Source of the DNA: Hyphochytrium catenoides
Lineage: Eukaryota > Protista > Hyphochytriomycota
Reading direction: 5' to 3'
NCBI GenBank assembly: GCA_900088475.1
Contig: FLMG01001932.1
Span: 1-48,198 of the forward strand
Length of the DNA: 48,198 nt
Below are positions 32,209 to 40,125 of this stretch, one piece after another (the stretch's first letter is position 1; each line of letters opens with the position of its first letter). The notes below the pieces were generated by a model, which was not told where the DNA came from, did no database searches, and saw only the letters and a program-made list of their open reading frames with translations. The translations under genes and the position numbers were made by a program.

Positions 32209-35200
32209 CTAAGCCACGTTGAGCAATTTCTTAGCGATCTGATAGTAGTCACCTACACCTCTTCTCAGGTCCTCAAGGGATATGTACTCCCGAGGACAGT
32301 GAGCGTCGCAAATATCTCCAGGGCCAAAAAGATAGGCAGTGCCTGAAGTAAAATGGAGAGAAAGGAAACGTGTGTAACACAAGCACCATGCTATATGAGA
32401 GACTTTGCAGGGTATAGAGGGAGCGGACAACTTGGGCCGTTGGTTGCTAGTTCAGAGTAGTTTGCAGGCTAGGCATATTAACGGTAGGGCAAAAGAGCGA
32501 GACGGAGATACTGACCTTGCTTCTTTCCAAAATTGAAGTATGGTATATCAGTGTTGAAGCACGCCACGTCAACCTCGAAGCCATCCACGACTCCCAGACG
32601 GGCAGGAGGGTTGTGAGTGATAAGCTGCACCTCCACACGGTCACCCGCAATTTTCTACCGACCAAAAGGTGTCAGTCAGTGGCGAACTAGTAAACGTAAA
32701 CATCGAATAGAACAGAGTAGAACACTAGGAGGAGAACCGTTTGATGCCAAGTCAACGGCTCTCTGCCGATAGCCAGCCCCGTATTCCTCCATCTCGCATT
32801 ATCCTGTCTTAGATTACATGCTATCCTCGCCCCAAAACAACCGTCCAGACTTCTCTCTCTAGCTCTCCCTTTCCGAGACCCGCTGAGTACCTTCACAATC
32901 TTTCTCCCTCTCTCTCTACTTTCAGCTTTTTCTCTGCTCGTTCTCTTCCGAGCCACGTCTCTGTCTCGGCCCTTGCCCCTCGCTTGTATTGCTTTCCGCT
33001 GCATTGGTACGATGCCCACCTTTAGTCTCTCAAAGATGGCGAGTGGATCAGAGATCACTCGGAACATTAGGGTTGCCTCTGCATACTCTGGGACTGCATT
33101 GGNNNNNNNNNNNNNNNNNNNNNNNNNNNNNNNNNNNNNNNNNNNNNNNNGCATATAAATCACTCTCCTCTCTCTTCCCCTCCTACTCGTTAACGCATGC
33201 CATGGCTCCTTCCTTCTCCAACCTTGATGACTCCGATATTCATTGTAGTCTCCCCAAGCTCCTCACTTGAGGGCCATTTCTCTGCACGAAGGTCGGACAA
33301 GACATCCAACAGCGGTTCAATAGCTGATTCCCCAAGGTGCGGGTAGCCTGAGAGGTGGCTCAGCGTCAGCTCGAACTCACAGATAGACCACTGAGATTAG
33401 GCAAGTCTCTTATTTAAGGCAAACATCCGCTAAGAAAAAATCAGAAACAAGGCCGGGAGACCGTACAAGGGAAAATTCAGGCCAGACTAAAGAACCACGA
33501 CATAGGGCCAATGACACCGACGGTCAACGGCGAGAATAAAAACTTCATGAATCTCTCTTCCCATATCATAGAGTACGTAGCCCAAAAGATGGAAGATAAC
33601 AAGGAGAGACCTAGAGAAGGACCCACCGCTATGTGCTGATACTCCTTTTTTGGACAGCACAACCTTGAGAATTCCCTTCTGCAGTCTGATAATCTTGCGA
33701 GCTGTGGGCTCAGCGACAACAAGAAACTCAGGATCTAGGCCCAGAGCGTTAGCTGCCTTCATGCCTACCAGATCGTAGCGGTATCACACGTTGATGTTAG
33801 GTGGTGGTAGTGAGGAGCTCGCTATGAAGGCGACTGATATATTGTGGAACGTTTTCACCTTAAGAGAGGACAGACGAACAGTAGAAAGTGCGAGATCGAG
33901 ATACGTCATCTTGACGGGGACCGTATGAAGAGGAAGGATTCCAAACCTCTATAGCTGTTGGAGAAAGAGAGACAACACTCGAGTCTCTTCAAAGGAGATG
34001 CGAAAGAACAGGAGGGACAAATATGATTGTGAAGAGACGAAGACGGATTGAAGAGAGGATAAGGGTGACGAAGAAACACACCTGAATGATCTGTCTCCTC
34101 AGATACCACGAAGAGGATGCCAATATCCTGAGAAGGTTAGAAAGTTTTACATCTTCAATATACTCTTTCTACCTCTTCTGTGCAACTACTTACCTCTATT
34201 CCTTCCTGTACCAGCTTTTGGGCAGCGCAGAGCATAGCAGCGAGGAGACTCTTGGTGTCACAGGCTCCCCTCCCATACAAGTTCTTGTCGTCCAGGCGCG
34301 CAGGGAAGTACGGCGGTACCGTGTCAATATGGCTGCAGGAAAGATTGTTAGGCACTAAGAGTGATCTCGGGAGTGGATCTTCGCAGACAGATAGTGGATT
34401 CATGGAGAAGTGCCATTGCAAAAGAACCTGAAGGTTAGCATGCAGACATACGGCGAAGGGCTACCAGACATCTGAGCACACCACCATTGAGTCTTTACGT
34501 GCGACACGACATCTCTTAACAAAGTAAAGCATGAAAGTGATGTAAGGCTAAAGCCGCCAGCTCATGGGGCAATTCCCGGGGAGGTTAAAAGTAAGAGGAG
34601 GAATGACCAGGTGGGCGAGAGCCAGGAAGAGAGCGTCAGAGCAAACAAATAAGATACCTGTTAAAGATGAAGCGGGGAGAGGGGCAAGTGGGCCTCCTAG
34701 CGTAGATATTGAAGCGCTCTCTTTGAACGGGAGATAGATGCTGAGGAGGAACGGGCTGGAGCACAACTTCCCATCCTCTGGTTTCTAGCCACCGCTGTAA
34801 CACGCTGCTCATTGGGGCCTGAAAGGGAGAACAGACCAGGGATCAGGAAAGGGACGTACACGAGAGGTTTAAGAGGACAGGAGACATAGAAAACATGGAA
34901 GTGCCTGCTATAACCCGGAAGGCTGTGCGAGGTTGAGTTTATGGATGCAGAAGGAGGCGCAAGCCAATTCTAAAGCCTTAGCATGTGTAAAATAAATGAA
35001 AGGCCGGAGCGAAAAGTGACCCCAAACCTAGAGAAGACGACAAGGGAGCCTGTCGACATAGCGCTAATCCTACCTCATCTCCCGAGAGCGAGGCGGTATT
35101 TATAAGGGCAGCAGCCTTAATAGTTCAGGGTCAGAGAAGGGAACGGCAAACTCAGCGTTAGTCGAAATGAAGGCTTGGCAGTCAAGCACTGTCCTCGTGC

Positions 35201-38200
35201 CTGGTACCAAAAAGGACGAAGCTTGCGGGTAGAGCCATGATGATCAAAGGAAAAAGAGAGAGAAAAGGAGAAAGACAGACCAGGGCAACCACGTCGTCAC
35301 TGCTAGGATCTGCAAGGTCCAGGGCTGCCTTCTCTTCTGGCGACAGTTCCTTGTTGGCGTCTCCTGATGGCTCTAAATGGTTGAACGGTAACTTCAGATA
35401 GCATGTCGAGCCTCTTTGCCTTCATTTGGCTATCTCAGGTCTAATACGTTGCCAGAGCTCTCTCCCTTTTGACTCCTCTTTCTCTCGTCATTGCTGGGCT
35501 GCCACACCAGCTATCTCTCTCGGGGTGTCCGCCTTTCACGGACATAGTCATTCGTCTTGTCGACCGAGTTACCTTTATCAAGCGTCCCTTGTTTGTCGTT
35601 TTCCTTAAAATTTGGATGGAGGTGCCATAATCCTCCGACTGCCGTGGCGCAGATCACCTCCGAAGCCGCAGAACCGAAGATAACACTCTCTAAGAGTGTA
35701 TCTGGACGCCAGCCCTATGTGAGAGACATTGTCAAAGGGTAAGAGAAGGAACAACGATAGAGCGACATCTTAAGGGCAAGACAAGAGAACAGCACATTAA
35801 GGGCAAGAGTGAGTGAATGCGAAGGCAGCTGTTCCAATTACAATGACGATGACGGAAAACATCGAGCACAAACGAGCGTTGACGGGAAAGTGGCACCATG
35901 GCTCATCGCTAACGTGGCACATCACAGCTACAAAAGCTTCAAAGTATAGTGCCATTCAAAAAAACCGCAGATCACCGACGTTTCTCACCTGAAGGACCTC
36001 TGCTGATAGGTCAACAACAGCAAAGTCCGCTAGCTTGCCGATGGCAATCTCTCCCTGCAAATATGTCAATTCTCTTAGCACCGGCCAATGCCACCAAGGG
36101 GACCAGGGAGCCAGGAATATCGCTCCCGTCAAGAAAGGCACAACTCAGGAACTTTAAGCCCATGTCTATGGCACCCTGCAATACAGCCTTACCGCGTTGA
36201 CACCAAGCGATCTAGCACCATTTCGGCAGGCATAGGAGAGAAGCTCCGCTGCTAGTAGCTCCTCGCCCACAGCTGCCGCAACAGCTCCTCTTCTGTTCAG
36301 CCTCAGCCTGTGCGCGTACTCTAACCTATAGCGATACATGGTACAGTACGTGAAGAGACAAAGAAGCTTCAGTATAAGGGCCTGCAAACCTGCAAACTCA
36401 AGACACTCTTCGAGCTTTTGAATGCACTGGGAAACGGCACAATCAAGAAGCCCTGTAAAAATAGAGAAACTTGAAGATAACAGCGAGAGGCGGGCTATCG
36501 CTCTGGCAGGTCTAACTTATGGACAAAGGTAAGAGACGCTGGAGAAGAGGAGAATAACGCTGAAGAATGGAGTCGGCACCATCGCATCTCCTCTATCATA
36601 TCAATGCGCGCATTGCAGTCTGAGCCCAAGCAAATACTGCCACCGCAAGATTGTAGGTCAGGAAAGCCATCTCCAAGATTGCCCTAATCAGTGACAGTGA
36701 GCACGCATAGCAAGCAAGGAGAGCACATGAGTCTTTTTCTCTCTAATCTACTCTTCTCTCCCAGCGACAACCAACCTCCTCCTTCTTTCCCGTCCCCCCT
36801 TGTTGCCTCATTCTCTCTCTCTATGTGTCTCTCTTCTCTCTCCTTTTTCCCTCTGCTTCTCTCTTCTTGTTCTGCTCTGTCTCTCTCTCTTTCTCTCTTG
36901 GTCTCTCTTGATCTCTATCCTCACCATCTCAACTCTCTCTCTCTCTCCCCCCTTCTTTCCATTCAGTAGGACTTCAGATAACGACAAAACCAACGGTTAT
37001 GGCTCTCCAACAGTAGCCCTCACTACTGCTACTTTCTCCTTGGTGACTTTTACTTTTTGCATCTGATCTGCCTTATATCATTGGTCCCGTCCTACCTCTG
37101 TAAGGGGGCAGATGCACACATTGCCTCCTCTCCTGACGAACTCCTGCAGATCTTCCAAGGGACTCCACGTACAGTGCACGGCAGTCATCTCCGAACCCAG
37201 CGGTAGTTCCTCTAATAGGATTTGCAGCGGAGTGCGCGCCAGGGCAGCGCGGCAGTCCTCCAGCTCTTTGGGCTGACAGAAGTGAGGGAGAAGGCGGATA
37301 AGTGGCTATGCGATGAAGAAGCAGACGTGTGCTGCGACATCTTTTTAGCTATATGTGGGAGGTTCGGTGGCTTTCTTCTAGGAGAACAGAGGCTTTAACG
37401 ATAAGTATGCGCAAATAACAACCTGGAGATGCCAAAGACAGAATGACGTAGAGGCAAGCGGAACCCCAGAAAAGGAACCGGCGAAGATAGAGAGCCAGAG
37501 AGCCAGATGAGACATAGAGTAAAGGATCGCCTATACAAGTCACCTGCTCCTCTACGTGCATGTGGAAGACGAGCCCTCGTCGTAACGCCTCCGCATGCAG
37601 CTCTATAATCTGCGGCACAGAGGCAGCCCGGAAGCTGTGCGCTACGGCACCTAGAGACTGTGAGAAAACAATCAAGCCGCAAGTGTCATGAAGCGCTTAA
37701 GTTGATGATGGCGCGAAGGGAGCAATAGTGGAAATGAACAGAAAGATAAGGAGAGAGAGATACTCCTATTGCATTATAGAGGAATATAGTTGCACAGGAG
37801 CTCTGGCTGACTGAGCACAGCATCACACTTCTCATCGTCGATCTGTTTAAGTACACCTCGAGCTTCCAGCTTGCCCGGGGCCAAGAGTAAGTTATTCTCA
37901 CCTGACTCTTCTTGTCCAGCAGGCCCTCCAATCTGTCCATATTCTCCCAATACAGCCGCACATCCGACGTCTGAAACCGTAGCTGAGGCGCAGAGGGAGG
38001 CGCATCTTGGAAGCCAGAGAAGGCGTAGAAGACGTTCAAAAGAACGAGGCGGATGCCTAGAAACATAGAACGCCAGAGTGCGAATATCCAAGTTCAAATA
38101 TCAATGATGGGGACACAGAAAAGTGACGGAGACAGAGAAAGAGAGAGGTTAAAGAGGGACTGGCGTAGGAGAAGAATCGGCTTCCGTAAGAGCAGGTCCC

Positions 38201-40125
38201 CTCTCTTGCCGCTGTAAACAGTTCTTTCCTTCCATCAACCTCCTCTCTTGATCGGTCCTTTCGCTCCTAAATGGGGCTGCTTCTTCCCTTCACCCCGCAT
38301 CTCTCTCTCTCCTCTTTAGTTCTTATGTATCTCTTTTGTCGTTACTTGCGAGCTTGTGTCTCCTCTCTCTTTCTCCCTTTCTCGTCCATCTCTTCAGTTC
38401 TATCTCTCTCGCCTCTTCCCTTCTCCCTTCTCTTTACGTTTCTACTTACCCACATCCTTTGCCGCCTTAAGCACGAGCTCATCAAGAGAGAAATCCTTTG
38501 TTCCTCTTCTGTGGTGAAGATAATGGAACTCTCCCACCGTCGTGATGCCTCTTTCTCGCATCTCTTGGAAGCAGCTTCGTGTGAGAGAGTAGAACTCCTC
38601 AGGTGTAATATTCTCCGCTATATTGGGAGAGACAATGGAAGCGCAAAGTAGAGAGAGAGAGACAGATAAAGAATTAAAGAGAGAATATCCCTAATGTTTG
38701 CACTGGCATCTGTTTGGTGAAGCTTCAAGGCCAACCTTTTCTTCGCCCGGCGTTATATACTCTTTCTCTCTCTCTCTCTCACTCCCCTCTTTCTTTGTCT
38801 CTCTCTCTCCTCCCTCTCTCTCTCTCTTCTCCCTCTCTTCTTACCCCTCTCCGTATGCCTCTCTCTTCCCCCTCTCTCCCTCTCTCCTCTTCTCCCCTTG
38901 TCCAGTCGCTCTGTTCGTTCGGTGTCTCTCCTATGTTTTCCTTTTAGCAAATCTTACCAAGTGCATACATCTCTTTTCTCCAGGTCCAGAAGCTGTTAAC
39001 TCCTTGCTCTCTCGGGTAAGTCTCTCCTTTCCCTCGAAGGCCTCTCTGGAAGGCGTGAGAGTGAGCGTTCACAAATCCTGGAAGAAGAGCCTTTCCCCTT
39101 AACGTGACGGTAGCTAGAGAGAAAGAAGGAAAAAAGAGAGAGAGCGCAAGAGAGAAACAGAGAGAGAGAGAGGCGCAAACAGCAAGAGAGAGAGAGCCGC
39201 AAGAAGCGGAACCCCAATTGAAGGTGGCGGGAAGTTGAGAATGTGGGGCAGGGAGAGAGGACGTAGAAGAAACAGTTAGAGTAGATAGAGCAGACAGTGT
39301 TTGAAGAAAGCCACTTAGTCTGGTGGAAAGAGAAAGAGAAAGAGAGACTTCATGGTGAAGGTCTGTTCCATGGTAATAAGGAGGTAATTAGAGGGAGAGG
39401 AAGGAAATCAAAGAAAAGAGAGGGAGAGAAGACACTGAGCGCCACGTTGGACCCTTCTTGTCAGTCCGCTCCATCTTTTCTGTCATGTCTCTCCTGTTCG
39501 CGCTATAGATCGCCACAATGACTTCCCCTCTCTCTCTCTCTCTCTCTTCCGCTCTCTCTCGCGTGCGCTCTCTCTGTCTCTCTCTCTCTTCGTTAGCATA
39601 CCTTTCTCCTTGATCTCGCTGGCTTTTCCCAAGGACTTGATGAGTCCATCCTCCCCAACCACGATCTTGACGTCTCTCTGGGGCAGATGAAGAAGGAAAA
39701 GAGTTACAAACGCGGAGACGAAGAGAGAAGGAGAGAGAAGGGGAAAGACTGCTACAATACCGGTAGGTTGTGAGGAGGAACCGGTGTACCGCGTTATAAG
39801 AAAAAGAAAGTGGATTCGAGCAAGGGAGAGAGAGAGAAAGACAGGGAGAGAGAGAGAGAGACAGAAAGAGAGAGACAGAGAGAGAGAGAGAGTAGAGAAA
39901 CACAAAGACGTCTAGGAAGAAGACGTGGCAAGGAGAAAGACTTTGACACGGTTTGAGCAAGCGATAGGAGAACGGATAAAGCTCTAAAAAAAGGGAGAGA
40001 GAGAGAGCGAGGGAGAGAGAGAGAGAAGAAAGAAAAAGAGAGAGAGAGAGTGTTACCTGGAAACTGCGGCCAAGCCAGGCCCAATCCGCCTGGATTACCT
40101 GCGCGGCAGATTGTTGCCGCTCCAT
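32209..40125 (-). CDS. hutF: Fusion: formiminoglutamate deiminase (HutF-type amidohydrolase) + M20 (ArgE-like) metallohydrolase; 21 exons
   Basis: Exons: 40125-40057, 39677-39602, 39113-38958, 38617-38450, 38056-37902, 37657-37544, 37272-37096, 36683-36580, 36325-36193, 36054-35989, 35714-35573, 35372-35281, 35115-35074, 34818-34658, 34332-34194, 34127-34082, 33764-33627, 33347-33223, (gap)-33020, 32654-32516, 32342-32209. HutF motifs: LPGFVNAHSHAFQRGLRG, SFWTWREEMY, GITTVGEFHYLHH, AHSFRA, HMHVEEQ, VHCT, CPLTEGNLGDG, GSD, EEMRWLEY. M20 motifs: SLSGDE, NSHIDTVPP, GRGACDTK, VSEET, AEPT, AHSGYPHLG, NAVP, FGPGDICDAH. Confidence 0.85.

Follow-up and report, generated by a model that had tools for sequence, protein, structure and literature searches.

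In Pseudomonas, histidine breakdown through HutF and HutG is textbook biochemistry. We know of no formyl-removing enzyme in eukaryotes, or in those bacteria that possess HutF and lack HutG. A gene on the minus strand of contig FLMG01001932.1 of Hyphochytrium catenoides (assembly GCA_900088475.1; the whole stretch of 48,198 nucleotides is referred to here as the window) raises the question of whether such an enzyme can be joined to HutF itself. The gene spans positions 32209 to 40125 and comprises 21 exons and ~823 codons, from an ATG at 40125-40123 to a TAG stop codon at 32211-32209. It would give rise to a single cytosolic polypeptide of ~823 residues serving the last two steps of folate-independent histidine utilisation. 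Specifically, a HutF domain would hydrolyse N-formimino-L-glutamate to N-formyl-L-glutamate and ammonia and, beyond a variable linker of ~40 residues, a short ArgE/DapE-related M20 hydrolase with a dimerisation domain would convert N-formyl-L-glutamate into glutamate and formate in place of the unrelated HutG. We are highly confident that the HutF–M20 fusion is real in this window; given that it is, the M20 half is likely to be an N-formylglutamate deformylase, and we favour, on balance, the view that one fused protein carries out both last steps of histidine breakdown. Both enzyme activities are predictions from sequence, and this holds most of all for what the M20 half acts on. The proposed protein would resemble mammalian FTCD in that both are bifunctional fusions dealing in two steps with the formimino group of formiminoglutamate; FTCD, however, depends on folate, is built from unrelated folds and yields 5,10-methenyl-tetrahydrofolate instead of formate.

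The exon model was rebuilt by script from the minus strand between 40400 and 32000 and its three frames. Eighteen exons were placed before an assembly gap and three after it, with GT..AG at every border and no internal stop, giving a product of 823 residues, five of which are allowed for the gap. Exons 1-11 encode the HutF-like domain, exon 12 the linker, and exons 13-21 the M20 hydrolase with its dimerisation domain. The two halves are fused across intron 11 (35373-35572; GT…AG, 200 bases). On its 5' side, exon 11 (35573-35714) holds the end of the HutF domain (…AVGGLWH, which corresponds in the alignment to the end of bacterial HutF) and the start of the linker; on its 3' side, exon 12 (35281-35372) encodes the linker, containing the motif AALDLADPSSDDVVA, together with the first M20 residues, and has no ATG. 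Joining 35573 to 35372 keeps the frame (AAA G | AG CCA), and the unspliced frame past the exon 11 donor stops at a TAG at 35513-35511.

Splicing of intron 11 in H. catenoides is thus a prediction from the DNA, and the alternative has to be weighed that two adjacent genes were wrongly joined, HutF ending at the TAG at 35513-35511 and the M20 half being transcribed separately from an unrecognised first exon. The junction in this species rests on sequence, and our sequencing-run searches, which listed no RNA run for 35200-35750 and DNA runs only for 33151-40125, count against the fusion; moreover, each half is also known as a separate protein in other eukaryotes. However, reading the frames of the minus strand from the in-frame TGA within intron 11 (35424-35422), 5' of exon 12, to the conserved N-terminal SLSGDE motif of the M20 half in exon 13 (35074-35115) revealed no in-frame ATG, the first later methionine lying beyond SLSGDE. 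An M20 first exon inside intron 11 was considered and rejected, as none of the ATGs in it is both in frame and followed by a usable splice site. Our initial annotation had described a single gene in which 35573/35372 splices HutF into M20 in frame, had quoted the linker, and had noted that the M20 half lacks an in-frame ATG of its own and follows a TGA just 5' of exon 12; the rebuilt model and the three-frame reading bear out the junction and the missing start, and the linker matches as quoted. As a side observation, contig word depth rises 2- to 5-fold at 35209-35328, a CT-rich part of intron 12, and at 35449-35568, a part of intron 11, where low-complexity intron sequence is repeated elsewhere in the genome.

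What decides between one gene and two is the conservation of the architecture in other organisms. A phmmer search with exon 7 (37096-37272) against 1.84 billion representative sequences returned eight HutF–M20-type proteins of 725-934 residues. The Pfam order Amidohydro_1, Peptidase_M20, M20_dimer was found in seven of these, and the eighth (P0058, a 737-residue fragment) lacked M20_dimer only. The survey of taxa that the initial annotation had proposed places the fusion in Phytophthora, Hyaloperonospora, Pythium, Globisporangium and Lagenidium, in Sphaeroforma arctica, in three Perkinsus species and in Amoebophrya, where transcriptome-derived frames of 980-1011 residues carry it. More than 30 HutF+M20 proteins align with the window model in one segment that runs from approximately residue 4 through residue 823 (40-55% identity), and with those of oomycetes, S. 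arctica, Perkinsus and Amoebophrya (e.g. OWZ10915.1 and XP_002765497.1) it shares domain order and colinearity over the full length. Exon 12 encodes a linker peptide homologous to that of oomycetes; bacterial HutF stops at the beginning of the linker, and bacterial stand-alone M20 proteins start at its end. In Phytophthora sojae the gene has four introns and the domain boundary falls within a single genomic exon; a Logan contig from this species (L009) is the exact spliced form, with a continuous frame of 861 codons. Lastly, in the two domain trees the HutF and M20 sequences of the window fall among fused proteins, with moderate support (Shimodaira–Hasegawa-like approximate likelihood ratio test, SH-aLRT, 88-89). 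Specifically, 15 of 17 fused M20 domains, the window's included, group together (SH-aLRT 89), and in the HutF tree the window sequence is sister to the oomycetes. The end-to-end alignment, the gene structure in P. sojae and the common linker together indicate that the architecture is real in the relatives and that the window gene is a member of the family. A fusion of the two domains is thereby upheld, and we consider a wrong joining of two genes very improbable. A further protein (P0018, 1265 residues) combines HutF with domains II, III and V of MutS, which probably reflects merged gene models and not a real fusion.

The initial annotation had also stated that no characterised enzyme of this architecture was known. 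This stands in so far as we found no paper describing or testing HutF–M20 fusion proteins; the architecture itself is present in public databases for dozens of species, mostly under the automatic name ‘formiminoglutamate deiminase’. The fusion is absent from the text and supplements of a survey of oomycete domain fusions (PMC2705460) and goes unmentioned in the Hyphochytrium genome paper (PMC5795050) and in a paper on gene transfer in osmotrophs. The window copy differs from the P. sojae gene in having 20 introns rather than four, which agrees with the description of the Hyphochytrium genome as intron-rich (PMC5795050); long CT/GA microsatellites fill many of these introns. The window gene is thus a new, intron-rich member of an existing and unstudied fusion family.

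The model is interrupted by a run of 48 N at 33103-33150. In each of two DNA runs from the same organism, one contig of 1459 letters bridges the gap between 33102 and 33151, its sequence replacing the 48 N by 130 letters. In all 11 homologues covering the region, exactly five residues, usually GGQAA, lie between NIGVIK and NAVPE. Together, this spacing and the 130-letter bridge indicate that the gap hides the 3' end of intron 18 and ~13 coding bases of exon 19 (five residues, GGxAx). The gap is harmless, as both sides are continuous and in frame. Differences between DNA runs provided further support for the exon model, since they avoid exons: all 12 listed indels fall in introns, and only seven of 40 listed substitutions are exonic, five of them synonymous, in a stretch of which exons make up 35%. 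Exon 14 (34658-34818) holds four of the substitutions, three of them synonymous. Between 32209 and 35800, three DNA runs labelled as the same species depart from the window sequence at dozens of positions, most of them in introns and some at half depth within one run, which points to allelic or strain variation. A metagenome run from aerosol contains 12% of the sampled words of 33151-40125.

The N-terminal domain is well defined by family models. When the exons were scanned against NCBIfam, exons 3-9 each found their best match in hutF equivalog models, colinear over profile positions 44-377, and summed to ~220 bits when scored separately rather than as a spliced protein; exon 11 gave a chance-level match only, and exons 1, 2 and 10 were outside the scan. 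Exon 1 (40057-40125) carries the start codon and the N-terminus, the alignment beginning at residue 1-10 of the homologues, and is followed by exon 2 (39602-39677). Exon 3 (38958-39113), with the metal-binding motif HSHAFQR and FWTWR, scored 62 bits against NF006681 over profile positions 46-88 and, like exon 4 (38450-38617, EFHY), also matched Pfam Amidohydro_1/3. Exon 5 (37902-38056) is followed by exon 6 (37544-37657), with AHSFRA and HMHVEEQ, by exon 7, with VHCTW and CPLTE, by exon 8 (36580-36683), with the catalytic aspartate in GSDCN, and by exons 9 (36193-36325) and 10 (35989-36054), the last of which, like exon 2, is taken from the rebuilt model. All the expected HutF motifs are therefore present, and the metal and catalytic columns (HxH, H, the glutamate of HxxE, H and D) are kept, the matching columns being invariant in an alignment of HutF relatives. 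The HutF halves of the orthologues scored 323-390 bits on hutF models, compared with ~100 bits for the next family (8-oxoguanine deaminase), and the best solved structure for the Pythium oligandrum orthologue (P0118) was that of P. aeruginosa HutF (3MDU, 248 bits). The first ~445 residues are colinear with P. aeruginosa HutF (TIGR02022/NF006681) and keep its HxH, HxHxxE, H and D; the bacterial enzyme differs in being a stand-alone protein of ~450 residues that ends where the linker of the fusion begins. Based on these matches, the N-terminal amidohydrolase domain appears to be a HutF orthologue with a predicted deiminase activity.

The C-terminal half belongs to the M20 family. Pfam Peptidase_M20 and M20_dimer were matched on exons 15, 18 and 21, with scores above the gathering thresholds for PF01546 on exon 15 (34194-34332; 34.1 bits vs 24.6, E = 3.4e-8) and for PF07687 on exon 18, which encodes the dimerisation domain (33223-33347; 29.5 bits vs 21, E = 7.5e-7). 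Alongside SLSGDE, the M20 motifs are all in place: SHIDTV, with its histidine ligand, and GRGACDTK, with the bridging aspartate, in exon 15; SEET, with the catalytic and a metal-binding glutamate, in exon 16 (34082-34127); AEPT, with a glutamate ligand, and AHSG, at the start of the dimerisation domain, in exon 17 (33627-33764); and DAHCPREY, with the last histidine ligand, in exon 21 (32209-32342), which ends in the stop codon. The dimerisation domain continues through the visible part of exon 19 (33020-33102, in frame from 33100) and is followed by exon 20 (32516-32654). The five metal ligands and the catalytic glutamate of M20 are thus kept, and the earlier assignments of the two halves to HutF and M20, as well as the claim that both domains retain their metal and catalytic residues, hold against these models and motifs.

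Within M20, the domain fits none of the characterised types closely. It shares the M20 fold, the dimerisation domain and the metal ligands with ArgE (E. coli, 7RSF) and DapE (4PPZ, 5VO3), but these, the best solved structures for this half, matched at only ~70 bits; the fused orthologues reached 111-130 bits on the ArgE model TIGR01892, whose cut-off is 297.7, and no DapE model reached its cut-off on them. The M20 half instead falls into a shorter subfamily, of ~333 residues as a stand-alone protein, that forms its own clade in the tree. This subfamily was found in bacteria (Acidobacteriota and Acanthopleuribacter) and in eukaryotes (brown algae, Tribonema, Chattonella, nematodes, a chytrid, a choanoflagellate, Diphylleia and a foraminifer). 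HutG (PF05013; TIGR02017), which in bacteria usually accompanies HutF, catalyses the reaction proposed for the M20 half but comes from an unrelated family; the M20 half is not an FGase member and would be comparable to HutG in function alone. In two Acidobacteria loci (L013:8982-13224 and L014:5083-9325), the stand-alone short M20 gene, whose product is the closest bacterial relative of the window's M20 half, lies tail to tail with genes for the alpha and beta subunits of an NAD-dependent formate dehydrogenase, with slight overlap, a pairing that is suggestive of a formate-releasing enzyme but confined to a single lineage.

The case for a deformylase rests on the company that HutF keeps elsewhere. 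We found a second type of fusion in which a peptide deformylase, with GAGIAAPQ, EGCLS and HELDH intact, is N-terminal to HutF in proteins of 659-707 residues. These are uninterrupted frames on marine metagenome contigs (L001-L006 and L102:10001-12124). The contigs are gene-dense, and neighbours encoding Josephin, Skp1, Oscp1, Myb and ABA4-like proteins indicate that they are eukaryotic; their source is probably a picoeukaryotic alga.

In bacteria, the 80 best hutF loci were examined with flanks of 6 kb. An M20 gene lay within this distance of hutF in 30 of the 80 and was directly adjacent on the same strand in 26; hutG (TIGR02017) was found in 15, and M20 and hutG never occurred together (0/80). 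The M20 gene is upstream of hutF in Planctomycetota, Gemmatimonadota and Thermoanaerobaculia and downstream in Pyrinomonadaceae and Myxococcota, the hutF loci with an ArgE-like M20 (L020-L029, L033-L046, L056, L059, L062, L063, L066, L067, L072, L084 and L090) belonging to Planctomycetota, Gemmatimonadota, Acidobacteriota and Myxococcota. In the HutF tree, one clade (SH-aLRT 99) unites all M20-adjacent bacterial hutF with all eukaryotic HutF and leaves every hutG-adjacent hutF outside; the eukaryotic HutF clade arises from among the HutF sequences of Planctomycetota, Gemmatimonadota and Thermoanaerobaculia, and not from those of Pseudomonas. T12A2.1 of C. elegans was considered as a HutF and rejected, since it is amdh-1 (the HutI step), and an argument from co-occurrence in nematodes was dropped with it. 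In P. sojae, an intronless hutI gene (imidazolonepropionase; TIGR01224, 400.7 bits; L008:1353-2654) is the head-to-head neighbour of the HutF–M20 gene, and the pair is a small hut gene cluster in an oomycete. No hutI neighbour was found beside HutF–M20 at the Pythium oligandrum locus (L007). Together, the HutF–peptide deformylase fusion, the bacterial hutF–M20 pairs without hutG, the HutF tree and the hutI neighbour in P. sojae support the proposed deformylase role of the M20 half.

As a separate observation on the bacterial loci, an open reading frame (ORF) of ~360-375 residues without a Pfam or NCBIfam match is conserved in 13 of the 80 (L046:7175-8254 and 12 similar, in Pyrinomonadaceae). 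All 13 also carry an ArgE-like M20 near hutF, and the ORF product could be a third member of a hutF–M20 module.

Several observations weigh against this role or limit it, and some of them favour an alternative in which the fusion is real and its M20 half acts on another substrate, as an ArgE/DapE-type deacylase of N-acyl amino acids or a peptidase, or serves mainly as a dimerisation scaffold, N-formylglutamate being left to another enzyme. In the M20 tree, the sister clade of the fused domains consists of bacterial M20 domains fused to aspartate kinase or a DapD-like transferase, fusions which point to lysine-pathway deacylases. Stand-alone members of the short subfamily show no link to hut genes: none was found near the closest bacterial stand-alone relatives (50-55% identical) in three genomes, the subfamily is a separate gene in brown algae, and no HutF was found beside the stand-alone M20 of the brown alga Ectocarpus or of one metagenomic eukaryote contig. 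The bacterial M20 proteins encoded next to hutF pass the ArgE model TIGR01892 and are only 26-32% identical to the window's M20; they belong to another subfamily, and the parallel, while it supports the chemistry, is one of convergence without orthology. The non-overlap of M20 and hutG at hutF loci gives a Fisher p value of 6e-4 that is uncorrected for shared ancestry.

There is also a precedent to be considered. An M20 protein (COG0624, At5g43600-like) was predicted from genome context as an ‘alternative N-formylglutamate deformylase’ by Gerdes et al. in 2011 (PMC3223725, Table 3, case 20), and the Streptomyces avermitilis protein that was tested showed no deformylase activity (PMC3223725), an outcome that counts in favour of another M20 substrate. 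In the literature we found nothing else linking M20 to formylglutamate. Like our proposal, that prediction placed an M20 hydrolase in the position of HutG on the strength of genome context. At5g43600 is, we presume, ureidoglycolate amidohydrolase, from the allantoate-amidohydrolase branch of M20; if so, the earlier candidate belongs to an M20 subfamily other than the window's.

Against another substrate stands, first of all, the need for a deformylase created by the N-formylglutamate that HutF makes. HutF has, moreover, been fused independently to a peptide deformylase, and in 26 bacterial loci its gene has that of another M20 as direct neighbour, with hutG missing from the 6-kb flanks of every one. 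A purely structural role of the M20 half is unlikely because all its metal and catalytic residues are kept. We therefore regard a different substrate as unlikely, though as the most serious of the alternatives, and retain the assignment of the M20 half as an N-formylglutamate deformylase that was first made in the initial annotation; it has gained support from the deformylase–HutF fusion, the bacterial hutF–M20 pairs and the hutI neighbour, and is weakened by the failed precedent.

A last alternative concerns the other half of the protein: the fusion may be real and its HutF-like domain act on a different amidine or guanidino substrate, in a two-step pathway unrelated to histidine. Most M20-fused HutF halves indeed score slightly below the curated hutF cut-offs (354-359 vs 362 bits, e.g. 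358.6), which tells against a role in histidine breakdown. Over the M20-fused orthologues the ranges are 349-359 vs 362 bits for NF006681 and 323-381 vs 413 for TIGR02022; the deformylase-fused HutF P0102 exceeds the cut-off of NF006681 (377 vs 362 bits). Within 6 kb of the M20-adjacent bacterial hutF genes, hutH, hutU and hutC are absent and hutI is present in one locus only, and tblastn searches of the 48-kb window with HutG, HutI, HutU and HutH gave no match. On the other side, the margin of the hutF models over the runner-up family exceeds 200 bits, HutF itself is the best match among solved structures, the domain retains the motifs that HutF relatives have in common, and in P. sojae the divergent neighbour is hutI. 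We consider a pathway unrelated to histidine improbable, and a HutF domain acting on N-formimino-L-glutamate remains our reading of the N-terminal half.

Two elements were available before this analysis: the fusion architecture was present in databases, and the idea of an M20 enzyme in place of HutG had been put forward, with a precedent that failed in another subfamily (PMC3223725), which again speaks for caution. What is new here is the proof of the fusion from the gene structure of an orthologue, the parallel deformylase fusion, and the hutF–M20 pairs in four bacterial phyla, which show no overlap with hutG in the sample. Taken together, the two kinds of HutF fusion and the bacterial hutF–M20 pairs provide a concrete deformylase candidate that can be tested cheaply. 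They also lead us to suggest, as a tentative idea that falls just short of an even chance, that HutF has acquired a partner for deformylation on four or more separate occasions: as HutG/FGase; as an ArgE-like M20 linked to it in operons (in Acidobacteriota, Planctomycetota, Gemmatimonadota and Myxococcota); as the short M20 that is fused to it in protists; and as a peptide deformylase, again through fusion, in picoeukaryotic algae. If this is true, many bacterial ‘acetylornithine deacetylase’ genes would really encode N-formylglutamate deformylases, bifunctional enzymes would sustain a complete folate-independent histidine pathway in several eukaryotic lineages, and the intermediate would possibly be passed between the two active sites. 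Should the deformylase role hold, the names of dozens of eukaryotic proteins, which at present refer to one half only, would be corrected, as probably would many bacterial ‘ArgE’ annotations, and a folate-independent pathway of histidine breakdown would be recognised in oomycetes, perkinsids, syndinians and ichthyosporeans.

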